Below, piece after piece: positions 8 through 24,299 of a DNA stretch of 64,000 bases. Origin of the DNA: Malacoraja senta (taxonomy: Eukaryota); assembly GCA_038087875.1 (NCBI GenBank), contig CM075983.1, positions 13,454,001-13,518,000 on the forward strand, given 5' to 3'. A program made the position numbers and the translations under genes. The notes beneath the pieces are model-generated. The model was not told where the DNA came from. It ran no database searches and worked only from the letters and a program-made list of their open reading frames with translations. Position 1 is the first letter of the stretch, and every line of letters starts with the position of its first letter.

Positions 8-56
8 ATGTCAACACTCAAATTGCAATTGTTGGTGACTCTAATCACATTTTCAG
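8..56 (+). CDS. VSIG1: VSIG1-like exon 1 (start codon, signal peptide MSTLKLQLLVTLITFSG)
   Basis: ATG at 8, hydrophobic leader, donor G|GTATGT at 56/57 (phase 1); joins exon 2 in frame (G+GA=Gly). Confidence 0.85.
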
Positions 57-4422: not shown

Positions 4423-4586
4423 GATGTGTGCGTGCGGTTCAGGTGACAGTGAAGGACGGCCAACTGAATGGGACGGAAGGAGGGAGCGTGACCTTGCTGT
4501 GCACCTACACAACTTCAGACAGTGACTCGTCTAATCTGAACGTCCAATGGTCTTTCGTGCCAAGCCACTCCAAATCACATACGCAG
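4423..4586 (+). CDS. VSIG1: VSIG1-like exon 2 (IgV domain N-half)
   Basis: Acceptor tttatcctcAG|, encodes CVRAVQVTVKDGQLNGTEGGSVTLLCTYTTS...LNVQWSF...HTQ, donor CAG|GTAAAT (phase 0). Contains the IgV B-strand Cys and C-strand Trp. Confidence 0.95.
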
Positions 4587-7157: not shown

Positions 7158-7271
7158 TGTCAGAAGTGGGATTTGAACCCACGCCTCCAGTTGGAGACCA
7201 GAACACCCGCTTGACTGCAGAGTGACTTTATTCCTTGAGTCTGGCGCCTTAGACCACTCGGCCATCCTGAC
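7158..7271 (-). tRNA. tRNA-Leu(CAA): tRNA-Leu(CAA) with 30-nt intron (7204..7233)
   Basis: Minus strand GTCAGGATGGCCGAGTGGTCTAAGGCGCCAGACTCAAG [intron] TTCTGGTCTCCAACTGGAGGCGTGGGTTCAAATCCCACTTCTGACA. A and B boxes intact, long variable arm, anticodon CAA at 7235-7237, TTTT Pol III terminator at 7147-7150. Confidence 0.97.
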
Positions 7272-8789
7272 ATTTATTTACACATTTTCAACCCTGGTAT
7301 CGATCTGATCAATATTTAGATAGCGTGCACTAAATCAAACGCATTGTACACAGCCTTAATGAGACCCGTGGGGTTAGATCATGGTTCTCTATAATGGAAC
7401 ATCGCATCCGCATTTTTAATTTCCAGTTTCCTGCAAAGTCAGCATCAAAGATACTAGACTTTTTGAACACACTTTGCACTTGTGGACTAGCTTTAAGATT
7501 TTATGTTGTAGGTTCAATTGGCTAAACCCCTTTACTTCCACACAGCTTTAAAGCAGAACACCGTTTACCTGTTGGTTCCAAACAGGTACAAATCATATTT
7601 CTGCACATTAATTTCATCTTCAATAGTTCTATGTAGCCAAGATAGACACGACATGTTGGAGTAACTCAGCGGGACAGACAGCATCTCTGGAGATGCCCGT
7701 CCCGCTGAGTTACTCCAGCATTTTGTGTTTATTTTCGATTTAAGGCAGCATCTGCAGTTCCTCCCTACACGTTCTATGTATCCACTTGATCAAAAAAAAG
7801 CACAGGCACTGGAAATCAGAAGTAAAAAGAGCAAATGCTGGAAATGTTCAGTTGTTCAGCAGTATCTGAAATGAAGAATTTAATTGTTACGTTGCCGGTA
7901 CATGTGTTAATTAAACTCTCTTGACACTTGAAAGAAAAACAGAGTTAAAGTTTAAGTTTTAAACAACTCCACTGGTAGCCCGTCTTCTTTGTTCCTTTCT
8001 CTCTTTGCTTCTTCGCATCTACGCCACGTCACTTTCTACATTGTCTCCTAAAATAACCTCCAATTTCAGGCAATTTCAGTTCCATAGACAAAGTCCACAG
8101 TCAGCAATGAGATAGAAGTGAGTTGGACAGTACTCCCCCTAGCCGATGGAAGGGCTATTTAGAAAACATGAAAAGAATCAAATCTGGAAGATATGTTTAT
8201 CTTAAGATCGATTATTCACACTTGAGCCATTGTTTCACTTCAAAGCATTCTGCATAGTACAGATTAGTTCAGGGAAGAATTATGCGAATTGCAGATTACA
8301 AGGTCAATTGAAAGATATTGATAAAGAAAAGTATTAGTTTCCCATGGCCGCACCCTGCCACTCCCCTTCTCTCTTACTTAACCAGCTCTTTAATCGGTTT
8401 GAAGGAAGGTGGACAGGAAGAATTAAAATGCTACAAAAACAATGCATTGATTTGGTGAAGTAAACATTTGCAGTTCCTAAAGCGTCTTTTTTCATGTATA
8501 CTATTTCATGTTAAGATGCCTTTTAGGTTAGAAACCAACTGCTGGAGGAACTCTGTCGGTCAGAGAGCATCTAGGGATGTATTGCCATGGACCCTTCTGT
8601 GAGAAGACCCAATACGTTGTTTGTCCTTTTCCCTCCACAGATGCTCTCTTCCCCTTATGTTCCTCACTCTGGCTTTGCATTTCACTCCTCTCTTCCCTCC
8701 TTATCTGACACCCTGCTGAGATCCGTCAGCAGCTTGTTGCTTGCTCAAGATTCCACCAACTGCAGTTTGAAGAAGGGTCACCTGTTCCT

Positions 8790-9003
8790 TTTCATGAACC
8801 TAGAGGTGTCAAAAGCAGATGCAAGAGATTGCATAGGAAGGAACTGCAGATGCTGGGGTCACCTGTTCCTTTTCTCCAGAGATGCTGCCTGACCGGCTGA
8901 GTTACTCCAGCATTTGGTGTGTATCTTTGGTTTAAACCAGCTTCTGCAATTCCTTCCTATGCAATCTCTTGCATCTGCTTTTGACACCTCTAGGTTCATG
9001 AAA
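8790..9003. repeat. 67-bp inverted duplication (2 mismatches) spanning a PLE 3' end and its flank
   Basis: 8790..8856 is the reverse complement of 8937..9003; an 18-bp direct repeat lies at 8775-8792 and 8856-8873. Confidence 0.9.
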
Positions 9004-9830: not shown

Positions 9831-9957
9831 ATCTTCATTGATTCTAAAACAATCCATTGCTTTCAATCTCTGTAAAGTGGGAGATTCAATGGTAATGAGA
9901 GAATATAAGCCTTTCTTCAGCAAGTTATCCAACGAGCACATTTCTACCCAAATCCAG

Positions 9958-10065
9958 CAGAGCCCCTGTCCTACTGGTTATGTTATGGATGAGAGCAGCG
10001 TGATGCACTGCCCCAAGACGGTACACATATTTGATAAACGAGGATTGTGTAGCCAGCATTTAGAG
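9958..10065 (+). CDS. VSIG1: VSIG1 candidate alternative (cassette) exon, 36 aa, symmetric phase 0
   Basis: Acceptor tttctacccaaatcCAG| (NAGNAG), consensus donor GAG|GTAAGT, 108 nt with no stop: QSPCPTGYVMDESSVMHCPKTVHIFDKRGLCSQHLE. Gap-free match (14/36 identical, 3 Cys aligned) to the recalled 36-aa insert of the long human VSIG1 isoform at the same junction. Confidence 0.8.
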
Positions 10066-10298
10066 GTAAGTTCTGTCTCTCTATGACAGACAGAATACGG
10101 CACCATGCAATGTTGTAAAGCGGCATGTTCTCCCCGTTCTCCATTTTGAACCATGTGTCCGTGGCTGTACATTCTCTGTTTGTGAACGGCACATGGAAAT
10201 GATGCTTCTTAGATCAGTAAACTTATCTTTCCATTAACGAACCATTCACAAATGAATAAAGTTACCTTTAAAAAATAACATAAGCTAATGAAAATAAA

Positions 10299-10609
10299 GG
10301 GCGGCACAGCGGTAGAGTTGCTGCCTTACGGTGCTTACAGCGCCAGAGACCTGGGTTCGATCCGGACTACGGGTGGTGTCTGTACGGAGTTTGTACATTC
10401 TCCCCATGACCGTGTGGGTTTTCTCTGAGATCTTCGGTTTCCTCCCACACTCCAAAGACGTACTGGTTTGTAGGTTAATTGGCTTGGTATAAATGTAAAA
10501 TTATCTCTAGTATGTGTACGATAGTATTAATGTGTGTTGCTGTTCAGTGGGGACTCGGTGGGTGAAGGGCCTGTTTCCGCATTGTATCTCTAAACTAAAC
10601 TAAACTAAA
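10299..10609 (+). mobile_element. tRNA-derived elasmobranch SINE (HE1-like), near full length
   Basis: B box GGTTCGATCC at 10354-10363, CR1-like 3' end (gaagggcctgtttcc...tgtatctc), (TAAAC)n tail. Confidence 0.9.
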
Positions 10610-10897
10610 GTACCAATTCAAACTTCACTTGATCTATGTCATCCAGATAATCATTCCTTTATATTATTTGTAATATTTTTAACCTAAAAAAAAAAATCAC
10701 TCTCATTTGTGTTAGTTACGTTTATCAAGTTAAATGTTCTTTGGGTGCAGGAAAGAGCAGAAAGGATTATCTGAGACTGAAGTACAGAGAAATAGATATT
10801 AATGCTTCAAATTGCACTTTTAGAAATAAGAAATGTTAGCCAGTCCAACACAGCCAAGAATCCATTCTGCAGCTTACTAGATAAATCAGGCTTTTAA

Positions 10898-11113
10898 GGG
10901 CCTGTCCCACTTTCACGACCTAATTCATGACCTCTGCCGAGTTTGCCCTTGACTCATACTTGCAGCATGGTCGTCACGAGGTCGTAGGTAGGTCGTAGGT
11001 AGGTTGTGATGCTAGTCGTGGCATCAAGTAGGTCGGGGCGTTTTTCTAGCCTGATGAAAAATGTCCATGAGTAAAAAAGGTTGTGAATTAGGTCGTGAAA
11101 GTGGGACAGGCCC
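10898..11113. mobile_element. 216-bp MITE with perfect 30-bp TIRs, flanked by TTAA
   Basis: TIR GGGCCTGTCCCACTTTCACGACCTAATTCA at 10898-10927 and 11084-11113; TTAA at 10894-10897 and 11114-11117. Confidence 0.9.
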
Positions 11114-11904
11114 TTAAGTCAACCAGAAAAAAATAACTGTGTACCAAATGCAGGCGGGTGGCTGTAAGGTAGCAACTCTATGGCTGCGCCACTGTGCTGA
11201 TTAAGTTTAAATTGATTAATTTCTTAATAGATGGTAGATGAGGAATGAGTGTGACATTACTATTTCTCGCATAAGCAGCCTTGTAAGTTGAAGATATGTC
11301 AGTTAAGGCTTAATTAGAGCAATTTTTATTTCATAAGCTTGTGGCTTCCAGGAATTGATAGAGAGAATCAAGCCATTAGTCAACCCGTTAGTCATCAAAG
11401 TGCCAGCCAAGACCTGCCATTATTAAAAGGGCTAGCTGATAAGCAAGCCAGCTCTTTCAAAAGCATATAGCGGGCTTGGCCAACCCCTAAACCCATAGCT
11501 TTTCAGATCCCTCTAAAAGCACACCTCATAATAGTTAATCTTTTACCCCTCATAGCAATGATCAAATCTCTATGCACTTACTTATGTAGAGTGGTCTCTT
11601 TTTCTCCTTCTGAGAGAGTCGTCATACAAAGTGCTTTGCACGAAAAGAATATTCAAACAATAGTATCTTTTCACAGGACAAAACAAACAGTGCCCTTATT
11701 TAATTTGGTTCAAACAAAAAAATTCTACACAGCACAGCTGTATCCAACAACCCTTTTATCAAACACTCCTGATGACATTTACAAATGATGAATGCATTGG
11801 GGTGTGTTATGTGCAATTAACACACAATGCTACAGTAAATTCATAACTTTCACAACCTACTCACCAGATTCCTGTTTCTTCAACTGTTGAAGAATAAACA
11901 GATG

Positions 11905-12301
11905 TCTCAGCACCAGAGACCCAAGTTCGATCCTGACATCGAGTGCTGTCTGTGTGGAGTTTGCACCGTTCTCCCTGTGACCGCGTAGGCTTCTTCCCAG
12001 TGCTCCACTTTCCTTTCACATCCCCAAAATGTGCAGGTTTGTACATTGCCCCTAGTGCGTAAATGTACATTGCCCCTAGTGTGTAAATGTACATTGCCCC
12101 TAGTGCGTAAATGTACATTGCCCCTAGTGTGTAAATGTACATTGCCCCTAGTGCGCAAATGTACATTGCCCTTGGTGCGTAAAGAGTGGATGATAAAATG
12201 GGATAGCATAGAATACGCACGGGTTTTCAATGGTTGGCATGGACTCGATGGGCCGAAGGGCCTATTTCCATGCTGCATCTAAACTGAACTAAGCTAAATT
12301 A
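11905..12301 (+). mobile_element. HE1-like SINE with internal tandem expansion
   Basis: SINE head (caccagagacccaagttcgatcc) and tail, with an internal 24-bp array. Confidence 0.8.
12040..12183 (+). repeat. Minisatellite, 6 x 24 bp (TGTACATTGCCCCTAGTGYGTAAA)
   Basis: Units start at 12040, 12064, 12088, 12112, 12136 and 12160, with no spacers. Confidence 0.95.
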
Positions 12302-12512
12302 AGAACAGCTTAAGGGTTGCAGTCTTCATGAAATAAATTTGCAAATCTCTTTACTTGGTATAAAGGTGCTAATTTCTTCAAATTCACACGTTTGACTAAT
12401 TTGCCATGGTAATGGGGTAGATACCAACTGCACTGTATGTTTCTGACCAAAGGAGCACTCTTTAATTTTACCACAAACTATGCACATTGGTTATTTTTTA
12501 TCAGAAGCTGCT

Positions 12513-12809
12513 TAGTTTAGAGCTACAGTACAGAAACAGGCCCTTCGGCACACTGAGTCTGTGCCAAACAGCGATCCCCGTACACTAACACTCTCCTACA
12601 CATTAGCGACAATTTACAATTTTTACTGAAGCCAATTAACCTAGAAACCTGCACGTCTTTGGATTGTGGGAGGAAACTGGAGCACCCGGAGAAAACCACG
12701 CGGTCACGAGGAAAACGTGCAAACTCCATACAGACGGCATCAGTAGTCAGGATCAAACCCGGGTCTCTGGCGCTGTAAGGCAGCAATTCTACCGCTGCGC
12801 CACCGTGCC
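12513..12809 (-). mobile_element. HE1-like SINE
   Basis: Reverse-complement match to the 10299 copy. Confidence 0.85.
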
Positions 12810-13328
12810 GTCTCTCTGAATGTTTCTTTCTTCTGAATGGATCTTAGTCTCAAAAACTGCACTGACATCTGTTGATTCTCTCTAAGGACAAGAATGAATC
12901 TACAGTATTGATGTCCAGTTCTCATTGTTGTAGGCTTCAAGTGTTTAATTGTCATATGAATCGGCAATGGAACAATATGATTCTTACATGCGGAAGCTGA
13001 ACAGGCCCAACAACACACAAATAAATATGTAATAATCAATTATACCATAATAACAGTTACTTGAGGTAACTATAAAGTGCAAAACCAAAGTCCGTAGACA
13101 ACCAAAGAGAAAGTTCATAGAAGATCATAGTTCTGTGATAGTGGTCAGTGTTGTGCAATGTTCAAGAGCCTGATGGTTGCCGGGAAGAAGCTCTTCTTGA
13201 ACGTGGTCACGCTTTTCAGGCTCCTGTACCTTCTTCCCAAGGGTAGTAGTGAGATGACAGTGCGGGCAGGGTGATGTGGATCTTTGATGATCTTGGCTGC
13301 TTTTTTGAGGAAGCTCCTCCTATAGATT

Positions 13329-13625
13329 ATAAGGTCATGTCATGTGATGGGAGCGGAATTAGGCCATTCGGCCCATCAATTCTACTCCGCCATTTAATCG
13401 TGGCTGATCTATCTCTCCCTCCTCACCCCATTCTCCTGCCTTCTCCCCATAACCCATCACAGCCGTACTAATCAAGAATCTATCTATCTCTGCCTTAAAA
13501 ATATCCATTGGCCTCCACAGCCATCTGTGGCAAAGAATTCCACAAGAGTCATCACCTTCTGGCTAAAGAAATTCCTCCTCACATCCTTCCTAAAGGAACG
13601 TCCTTTAATTCTGAGGCTATGACTG
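13329..13625 (-). mobile_element. CR1 LINE 3' fragment
   Basis: Reverse complement of the CR1 3' end (aggccattcggcccatc...gaattccacaa). Confidence 0.75.
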
Positions 13626-13843
13626 GTCCTAGACTCTCCCAGCCTTCGATGGTGGGGAGGTCAGTACCTGTGATGGATCAGGCAGTGTCTACCACTCTCT
13701 GTAGCCTCCTCCATTCCTGGGCGTTTGAGTTACCAAACCAGGCCACGATGCAACCAGTCAGTTTGCTCTCTCCCGTACACATGCTCATATACTGTTATAT
13801 AAGGCTGACTCGGTGTCTTATGGCTGCATGTTTTTATTTACAG

Positions 13844-14042
13844 ATCTACTTCTATGGGGGCAACATGACGTTTATAAATCCAGCCTTCAAAGGCAGATTA
13901 TTGGCAGGACATAAACCAGGAAATGCATCAATTACCATTGAAAAGTTGCGACCTACCGACTCTGGGAATTATATCTGTGAAGTTGAGAATCCACCGGACT
14001 TCACAGGCAATAACATCGGATCAGCAACACTCACAGTTTTAG
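13844..14042 (+). CDS. VSIG1: VSIG1-like exon 3 (IgV domain C-half)
   Basis: Acceptor tttttatttacAG|, IYFYGG...FKGRL...GNASITIEKLRPTDSGNYICEVENPPDFTG...LTVL (DxGxYxC motif; NPPDF as in VSIG1), donor G|GTAGTG (phase 1). Confidence 0.95.
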
Positions 14043-14249
14043 GTAGTGTATCACTTACCTCCACTGCTATAAACCTTTTTCTCCCCATGTGTAATTTTGT
14101 GTACTTCACGCTGATTTGGAACACATTTCACAGGGTTCATCCAACATTTGAACCCTTGCACAGAGCTCGAGTGTAACGTGTATATAAGTCACTCTATCAA
14201 AAAACAATACTCAACTCTAATCTCAGAATACCCAGTATCCACCCGAAAT

Positions 14250-18874: not shown

Positions 18875-19030
18875 TTCCACCCTCCAAGCCAAACTGTGGC
18901 ATTGTCGCACACCCGGCGAAGGCCAGGTCAGCAATCCTTACCTGCCATTGCGATAAAGGCGTCCCAAGTCCCAGGTATCGCTGGGTGAAATTGGTAGACC
19001 AGGTTCAACAAAACATTTCTGGTCATCTTG
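18875..19030 (+). CDS. VSIG1: VSIG1-like exon 4 (IgC2 domain N-half)
   Basis: Acceptor tttttattgcAG|, VPPSKPNCGIVAHPAKARSAILTCHCDKGVPSPRYRWVKL..., donor G|GTAAGA; 156 nt, phase 1/1. Confidence 0.95.
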
Positions 19031-20185: not shown

Positions 20186-20305
20186 ATCCAAGGACCGGAA
20201 TGTTGACCATTTCAAATATTTCTGATAATGAAAATGGTATTTACCAGTGCATCGCATTCAATATACTGGGAGATGAAACATGCACTGTCGACTTGACAAA
20301 ACTTT
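20186..20305 (+). CDS. VSIG1: VSIG1-like exon 5 (IgC2 domain C-half)
   Basis: Acceptor tttaatatttcAG|, DPRTGMLTISNISDNENGIYQCIAFNILGDETCTVDLTKL, donor T|GTAAGT; 120 nt. Confidence 0.95.
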
Positions 20306-22476: not shown

Positions 22477-22615
22477 CTTCTGAGAGTGATGCCATCATCG
22501 GAGGTATTATTGGGGCGGTTCTGATAGCATCAATCATTGGAGTTATCATCTGGATGGTTACAAAGAAAGCAAAGAAAAATGCAAAGAAAAATGCGCAAAA
22601 AGATACTGAACTTCA
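22477..22615 (+). CDS. VSIG1: VSIG1-like exon 6 (transmembrane helix plus basic stop-transfer)
   Basis: Acceptor ctttctgcttcAG|, SSESDAIIGGIIGAVLIASIIGVIIWMVTKKAKKNAKKNAQKDTEL, donor CA|GTGAGT (phase 2). Confidence 0.95.
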
Positions 22616-24061: not shown

Positions 24062-24299
24062 GGCCAAACAAGAATCCAAGAACACTCTTGCCACCTATGT
24101 GGCTGTCCCCACTGATGCTGCAGCTGCGGAAAGTACAAACCATGTTGAGTCACCAGATGTGGGCCAAAACAGCACGGACACCCCTGAGCTCCACCAACCT
24201 CCGCACGAACATCTGCCCTTGAGTGAACATGCTGATCCATCGGGCAGCGGGCAAGCAGAACGCAAGGAGAGTGAGGGAGATGGTCCACAGGAGACTTAG
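24062..24299 (+). CDS. VSIG1: VSIG1-like exon 7 (acidic cytoplasmic tail, stop)
   Basis: Acceptor tttctcttcttccaAG|, CA+G=Gln then AKQESKNTLATYVAVPTD...GDGPQET*, TAG ending at 24299. Spliced CDS is 1065 nt (354 aa). Confidence 0.9.

Follow-up and report, generated by a model that had tools for sequence, protein, structure and literature searches.

A probable in-frame alternative exon of VSIG1 in the skate Malacoraja senta, with counterparts in sharks, turtles and birds

The window, i.e. the whole stretch of 64,000 nucleotides analysed here, comes from the skate Malacoraja senta (NCBI GenBank assembly GCA_038087875.1, contig CM075983.1, positions 13,454,001 to 13,518,000 of the forward strand). 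It carries the gene VSIG1, and the subject of this work is a 108-nucleotide cassette at 9958-10065, within intron 2 of that gene, which we hold, with a probability of roughly 85%, to be a real, conserved, coding alternative exon of VSIG1. The gene model was obtained by mapping the closest annotated protein, the VSIG1-like protein of Rhinoraja longicauda, onto the window by tblastn, and the full protein falls on seven window exons at 86-94% identity. All 36 homologues returned by a shark query and the best 120 of the 285 found in a profile search are named VSIG1 or VSIG1-like, and the Pfam matches of a ray VSIG1 orthologue are to V-set, Ig_3 and I-set. Judged by the names of its homologues, by the domain architecture and by a seven-exon structure with a split variable (V) domain, the window gene is the VSIG1 orthologue. 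The features of the locus are given below, all on the forward strand, with a slash marking an exon boundary.

8-56, forward strand: VSIG1 exon 1, with the start codon and signal peptide, ending in phase 1; found by tblastn with residues 1-17 of Rhinoraja VSIG1 (94% identity); donor CAG/gtatgt.
4423-4586, forward strand: VSIG1 exon 2, the first half of the immunoglobulin (Ig) V domain (strands A-C), ending in phase 0 (ACG CAG/gtaaat); 87% amino acid identity to Rhinoraja.
9858-9957, forward strand: conserved upstream intronic flank, of which the last 40 or so nucleotides include the polypyrimidine tract and a likely branch site.
9955-9960, forward strand: NAGNAG tandem acceptor CAG/CAG, which permits an insert of 36 or 35 amino acids.
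9958-10065, forward strand: probable alternative cassette exon '2b', 108 nucleotides, 36 codons, phase 0-0, with three invariant cysteines.
10066-10080, forward strand: donor of the cassette, gtaagttctgtctc, kept in elasmobranchs; gtaag in archosaurs.
13844-14042, forward strand: VSIG1 exon 3, with the remainder of the IgV domain (strands C'-G), starting in phase 0 (ttatttacag/ATC TAC); 94% amino acid identity to Rhinoraja.
18875-19030, forward strand: VSIG1 exon 4; it encodes the first half of the C2-type Ig domain.
20186-20305, forward strand: VSIG1 exon 5; it encodes the other half of the C2-type Ig domain.
22477-22615, forward strand: VSIG1 exon 6; it encodes the transmembrane segment and the beginning of the tail.
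24062-24299, forward strand: coding part of VSIG1 exon 7, for the cytoplasmic tail, with the stop codon TAG at 24297-24299.

Exon 2 ends and exon 3 starts on a complete codon, so intron 2 is in phase 0 and the cassette is in frame with both of its neighbours. The seven-exon mapping thus agrees with the initial annotation of this DNA, which had placed the segment in a phase-0 intron and in frame with exons 2 and 3. The segment itself was also found as described there: on the forward strand, positions 9958 to 10065 make up 108 nucleotides without a stop codon, translating into 36 residues, preceded by a pyrimidine-rich tract, tttctacccaaatccag (ending in aaatccag/), and followed by the donor GAG/gtaagt. 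As the first codon of the exon is itself CAG, the acceptor forms a CAGCAG tandem. The cassette sits inside an open reading frame of 82 codons (9838-10086). By itself an open stretch of 36 codons is unremarkable; it is the conservation that lifts the cassette above chance. When the corresponding turtle insert was compared with the whole 64-kb window by tblastn, the sole match was at 9961-10053, with an expectation value (E) of 5.7e-8.

The same insert is found in VSIG1 proteins of other species. A phmmer search with the 36 amino acids alone against 1.84 billion representative proteins returned two bamboo-shark VSIG1 sequences (67-73% identity, E 5.8e-8 and 5.4e-7), matched at the corresponding position of the protein; the best of them is Chiloscyllium VSIG1, with 73% identity and E 5.8e-8. 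Four further matches, to bacterial HYR-like or LRR-like repeat proteins (E 1.5e-5 to 1e-3), were rejected since they only sum up short repeats, and the resemblance, which passes through a recurring 'CP..V..D..G.C' motif, is judged to be due to chance. In an alignment of 36 proteins the insert stands exactly at the exon 2/exon 3 junction in Chiloscyllium (2 species), Hemiscyllium, Heterodontus, Narcine X1, 6 turtle proteins, 2 parrots and Lacerta, and later searches added birds ranging from rhea and tinamou to passerines, as well as additional turtles. Altogether, 83 of the 196 VSIG1 proteins that were fetched contain the three-cysteine insert. There are also short isoforms that lack exactly these residues (Narcine X2, Chelonia X4 and Caretta X7), and long and short forms are annotated side by side, all of them as gene models, in Narcine (X1/X2), Chelonia (X1/X4), Caretta, Numida (X1/X2), Meleagris and Struthio. 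Such paired X1/X2 isoforms at NCBI normally rest on RNA evidence. The initial annotation had proposed that an in-frame alternative exon of VSIG1 has been kept since the split of cartilaginous and bony vertebrates, and this is borne out, as sharks, an electric ray, turtles, lizards and birds all have the insert at one and the same junction.

The residues of the insert are unevenly conserved. C4, C18, K20, V22, D26, R28, G29 and C31 are invariant in the 28 distinct 36-residue inserts, that of the window included, and M10, E12, V15, S32 and W33 are nearly so, which gives the pattern C-x5-MDE-x-SV-x2-C-x-K-x-V-x3-D-x-RG-x-CS with cysteines at positions 4, 18 and 31. The insert of the window is identical to that of Narcine in 31 of 35 positions and to the turtle insert in 17 of 31. 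The initial annotation had also reported an identity of 14/36 to a 36-residue insert in the long isoform of human VSIG1. The count is arithmetically right for the peptide given there; this peptide, which is very probably the genuine human insert, is in addition identical to the turtle and alligator inserts at 19 of 36 positions. Mammals were absent from the 36 proteins returned by the full-length shark query, a search restricted to the turtle insert returned turtles and one rhea only, and the best 120 of the 285 sequences in the profile search were dominated by birds. A search of the Atlas gave only generic V-set clusters, under a score level of 0.9.

The exon is intact in genomes, including some whose annotation leaves it out. 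Six genomes were compared, those of the window skate, Rhinoraja, the sevengill shark Heptranchias, the bamboo shark Chiloscyllium punctatum, Alligator and the guineafowl Numida. The annotated proteins of Rhinoraja and Heptranchias lack the insert, yet intron 2 of both genes holds an uninterrupted 36-codon copy, identical to that of the window in 33/36 and 28/36 positions, respectively. The Alligator model omits the insert as well, and its genomic copy is intact and identical to the turtle insert at 32 of 36 positions. In all six loci the cassette lies between exons 2 and 3, and in all six an AG at the 5' boundary and a GTAAG at the 3' boundary fall on codon boundaries. Frame +1 is the sole frame of the six that is free of stops in all six genomes. 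Stop codons, frameshifts or lost splice sites in related elasmobranchs were looked for in Rhinoraja, Heptranchias and Chiloscyllium punctatum, and none were found. The exon had been called 'hidden', and this is true of the nearest skate model, that of Rhinoraja, from which it is absent, but not of the annotations of other species, in which it is present.

The tandem acceptor calls for a separate comment. All four elasmobranch genomes retain CAGCAG, which is not found in archosaurs. The long isoform of Narcine lacks exactly the first Gln and has an insert of 35 amino acids, which is the product expected from the second AG of the tandem, whereas the shark models include the first Gln and have 36. 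A 35-residue form arising by NAGNAG splicing had been predicted from the skate DNA, and both the retention of the tandem in four elasmobranch genomes and the 35-residue insert of the Narcine X1 protein fit that prediction. We also noted that the Hemiscyllium model has 12 extra residues ahead of the insert, which are the translated upstream flank, read from an AG lying 36 nucleotides further upstream. That AG is in frame in the bamboo and epaulette sharks (Chiloscyllium punctatum locus L005:20915-20950). The flank of the skate is one base longer, so an upstream acceptor of the Hemiscyllium type would be out of frame in the skate. The 12-residue extension is either a lineage-specific longer form or an artefact of the model.

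A conspicuous difference between the cassette and its neighbours is found in the rates of synonymous (dS) and non-synonymous (dN) substitution among elasmobranchs:

Skate versus sevengill shark: dS 0.11 in the cassette, 0.61 in exon 2 and 0.36 in exon 3; dN 0.12, 0.28 and 0.16, respectively.
Skate versus bamboo shark: dS 0.15 in the cassette, 1.22 in exon 2 and 0.61 in exon 3; dN 0.23, 0.32 and 0.24, respectively.

The synonymous divergence of the cassette is thus 3-8 times below that of exons 2 and 3, and its dN is no higher than theirs. Over codons 18-32 (45 nucleotides) the skate is identical to the sevengill shark, every four-fold degenerate site included, and the differences within elasmobranchs are distributed over the three codon positions as 5/3/4 and 7/7/6, i.e. 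without a bias towards the third. Between elasmobranchs and archosaurs, with synonymous sites saturated, dN/dS amounts to 0.24-0.47; for Alligator versus guineafowl it is 0.40. The protein-level constraint on the cassette at deep divergence is similar to that on exons 2 and 3.

The constraint extends into the flanks. Between skate and sharks there is a conserved island from about 9858 to 10080 amid an intron that is otherwise unalignable. The 40 nucleotides before the acceptor are nearly invariant in elasmobranchs, and between elasmobranchs and archosaurs 26-30 of the 40 are identical in an ungapped comparison, as against 11 on average and 24 at most in ungapped shuffles (n=5,000) and 10-12/40 in the control segments at -80..-41 and +7..+46. 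Read coverage of 9900-14100 was also examined, in the runs X4 and X5, which are genomic DNA, and in X1 and X10 (polyA), which are RNA; the DNA of a related skate in X5 has one synonymous change in 9900-10080 as opposed to 13 changes over the next 150 nucleotides. A reduced synonymous rate together with conserved flanks is an established signature of regulated alternative exons, and by its sequence the cassette bears these marks, namely flank conservation and a lowered synonymous rate. RNA structure was considered as a cause of the synonymous constraint and rejected, as the z-score against shuffles was +1.03 and the consensus fold of -12.5 kcal/mol had a covariation term of -0.08.

Intron 2 contains several other elements. 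A second conserved block, at 11452-11826 on the forward strand and collinear with the cassette, is 94% identical to Rhinoraja, 77% to Heptranchias (over 373 nucleotides) and 71% to Chiloscyllium (over 250 nucleotides), while no counterpart was found in alligator or guineafowl. All three of its forward frames are interrupted by stops, it is single-copy by read depth, and no RNA contig covers it; it is possibly an elasmobranch-specific enhancer or other regulatory element. An intron-containing tRNA gene that looks Leu(CAA)-like by eye lies at 7158-7271 on the reverse strand (52.9 bits to the Rfam tRNA model, E 2.6e-9); it was missed by ARAGORN run in bacterial mode, and the part at 7231-7274 resembles human DNA. 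Very high-copy interspersed repeats fill much of the space between the cassette and exon 3 (10182-10604, 10887-11309, 11874-12296, 12438-12860 and 13143-13847), with read pile-ups of 1e5-1e7 in the DNA runs and abundant reads in the RNA runs. Two repeat copies in opposite orientation, at about 10377-10499 and 12697-12809, give rise to 'opposite strands' joints in the reads. There is also a minisatellite at 12040-12183 with six copies of a 24-nucleotide unit (93% matches), and two hairpin-forming stretches, 7640-7820 and 8798-8996, give weak, sub-threshold matches to models of plant and animal microRNA precursors. The latter two look like palindromic repeats of the miniature inverted-repeat transposable element type rather than microRNA genes.

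The position of the insert in the protein was examined with an AlphaFold2 model of the Narcine X1 ectodomain, built on an alignment of 43 sequences. Both Ig domains were modelled confidently, with a predicted local distance difference test score (pLDDT) of 82-92 in most ten-residue blocks and lower values in a few blocks that contain loops. Strand C spans residues 63-70, the insert 79-113 and C' 112-118, in agreement with the placement between the C and C' strands that had been proposed from the skate sequence; in terms of the model, the insert is an extension of the C-C' loop. This loop of V domains is located at the end opposite the loops that resemble complementarity-determining regions (CDR), beside the GFCC' sheet that CAR/JAM-type proteins use for dimerisation. 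No Pfam family covers the insert, which splits the V-set match; the only hit is EGF_Tme5, with E 0.022 and 15 bits against a cutoff of 22. A known domain, EGF-like, HYR or other, was therefore rejected for lack of a significant curated match in Pfam.

It is necessary to consider the points that speak against an alternative coding exon. No mammal, amphibian or bony-fish sequence was among the homologues returned by our searches, and every protein that bears the insert is an NCBI gene model (XP_/KAM), none coming from a transcript assembly. Within elasmobranchs the dN/dS of the cassette is 0.7-2.7; this is so because dS is so low, hence the signal at shallow depth is one of nucleotide constraint and not of classic purifying selection on the protein. 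Run X10 has zero depth on the cassette, but also on exon 3, meaning that VSIG1 is silent in that sample. In run X1 one contig of 1,087 nucleotides covers exactly exon 3 (13841-14042) and then leaves the genome, at a depth of about 5, and the cassette has no contig of its own, so that skipping would probably be the main form in that sample, a result of very low power given that contigs drop rare variants. The single real complementary DNA (cDNA) contig that was fetched, from chicken, is the short form. Finally, the pLDDT of the insert is 51-56, which gives a tentative hairpin only, and a defined fold is not supported.

Some of these points would suit a different reading, in which the segment is a conserved non-coding element, be it an enhancer or a splicing silencer or enhancer, that is open by chance and whose annotation has spread by protein homology. 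The constraint at the nucleotide level without third-position bias, the clearly non-coding conserved block in the same intron, the purely computational origin of the insert-bearing proteins and the lack of a cassette contig in the skate RNA runs X1 and X10 are what one would expect of such an element. We consider it very improbable nevertheless, since 36 codons have persisted without a stop or frameshift since the origin of jawed vertebrates while each of the other five frames meets a stop in one or more of the six genomes, the AG and GTAAG fall exactly on codon boundaries in all of them, the deep dN/dS is low with saturated synonymous sites, the three cysteines and the D-x-RG-x-C core are invariant though many codons differ synonymously, and paired X1/X2 isoforms are, by the established practice of NCBI, normally derived from RNA. 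The opposite reading, that the exon is constitutive in skates and that short models such as that of Rhinoraja are annotation errors, can appeal to Chiloscyllium, Hemiscyllium, Heterodontus and many birds, in which the sole model fetched carries the insert. It is hardly credible in view of the exon 3 contig without a cassette counterpart in X1, the short chicken cDNA contig, the annotation of both forms in Narcine, turtles and several birds, and the depressed dS and conserved flanks that are typical of alternative exons.

The use of alternative 5' ends is a more serious rival. The testis-specific mouse transcript Vsig1C starts at an exon 1b that lies in intron 2 (Oidovsambuu et al. 2011, PMC3186807). 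The conserved Met of the cassette is precisely the first residue of the isoforms Gopherus X2, Dermochelys X5 and Phalacrocorax X2, and in Caretta X3 a different 5' exon is joined to the cassette. By analogy, the turtle and cormorant models with a Met start suggest a kind of transcript like Vsig1C, and together with mouse exon 1b they imply that the island may also serve transcripts with alternative 5' ends. One may go further and suppose that the island acts primarily as an internal promoter or as an alternative first exon, in which case its nucleotide conservation, both over the 100 or so nucleotides upstream and at the synonymous sites, would reflect transcription-start and 5' untranslated region (UTR) functions, and use as a cassette would be secondary. 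We find this improbable. Alternative 5' end use cannot explain the conserved acceptor or the nine in-frame codons with Cys4 that precede the Met; the acceptor AG, the pyrimidine tract and these codons are needless for a first exon and are kept from sharks to birds. Dozens of models moreover splice exon 2 to the cassette in frame, and the 36 codons are open in six genomes. The two uses can also coexist.

An alternative coding exon thus remains our preferred reading. Its position, length, frame, three cysteines and part of the upstream intron have been kept since the split of cartilaginous and bony vertebrates, which makes noise very unlikely. According to this reading, the skate segment would be a copy of an ancient optional coding exon of VSIG1, whose inclusion would add 36 residues, or 35 via the second AG, while keeping the frame. 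Inclusion would be controlled by bound splicing factors and may be specific to a tissue or stage, with the long protein probably a minority form in skates. The insert could then protrude as a small excursion, held by disulfides, at the end of the V domain that is nearer the membrane, next to the GFCC' sheet, where it would change the pairing of VSIG1 with itself or with a partner. Such a switch of adhesion is a speculation that we regard as rather doubtful. A bolder proposal is that of a module with two uses and of jawed-vertebrate age, in which a disulfide mini-loop with an odd number of cysteines would switch homophilic adhesion to a covalent dimer or to another partner, the conserved Met would mark the first coding exon of testis-type transcripts, and the 40-nucleotide element would be an ancient site of a splicing regulator; this seems to us unlikely.

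VSIG1 is used as a marker of gastric cancer. It is reported to be a stomach and testis adhesion protein that is needed for a normal glandular gastric epithelium in the mouse (PMC3186807). The VSIG1 literature that was searched treats it as a single protein form and makes no mention of the insert or its deep conservation, the variants described there being those of the 3'-UTR and exon 1b only. A full-text search with fragments of the peptide given as the human insert found no paper, and PMC6143958 was rejected as a source since its matches concern VSIG10L. The exon is, in other words, already in the public annotation of other species and new to the literature searched. It probably marks a further form of the V domain, one that is under regulation, and an intronic element common to sharks and birds is striking, even if deeply conserved alternative exons are as a class already well known; a protein form that has gone unstudied becomes testable. 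There is also a practical consequence for annotation, as the exon is missing at least from the skate, sevengill shark and alligator models, though it is intact in their genomes. As a side remark, chicken VSIG1 has been deposited under the name 'ChT1 thymocyte antigen', hence VSIG1 may have a role in thymocytes of birds, outside the stomach and testis literature.

It is instructive to compare the cassette with known systems. It resembles the deeply conserved regulated cassette exons in its length, which is a multiple of three, in its kept splice sites and conserved flank, and in a dS that is 3-8 times below that of its neighbours. Most of the well-known examples of this class belong to neuronal or RNA-binding-protein genes. 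In this respect the VSIG1 cassette is unlike them, as it lies inside the Ig V domain of a gene reported from stomach and testis. With the CTX/CAR/JAM group (CXADR, JAM-A) VSIG1 has in common an ectodomain of a V-set and a C2-type domain, a single transmembrane segment and a V domain made from two half-exons. No VSIG1 structure was present in the copy of the PDB that was searched, and among solved structures CAR (E 2e-15) and JAM-A (E 6.5e-13) come nearest to the VSIG1 of the ray. None of the solved CAR/JAM-type relatives found has a cysteine-bearing C-C' insert, unlike the long form of VSIG1. Mouse exon 1b is similar to the cassette in as much as it is an extra exon in intron 2 that is spliced to exon 3, but it is a non-coding first exon of 61 bp and not an in-frame cassette (PMC3186807). 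The closest counterparts are the annotated long isoforms of VSIG1 in Narcine bancroftii (X1), Chiloscyllium plagiosum, Heterodontus francisci, Chelonia mydas (X1) and Numida meleagris (X1), which have the same junction, cysteines, core and AG/GTAAG sites. The longer human isoform in RefSeq/UniProt is probably another. The skate cassette differs from these annotated counterparts in being absent from the nearest annotated model, and the CAGCAG acceptor is a feature of the elasmobranchs that the archosaurs do not share.

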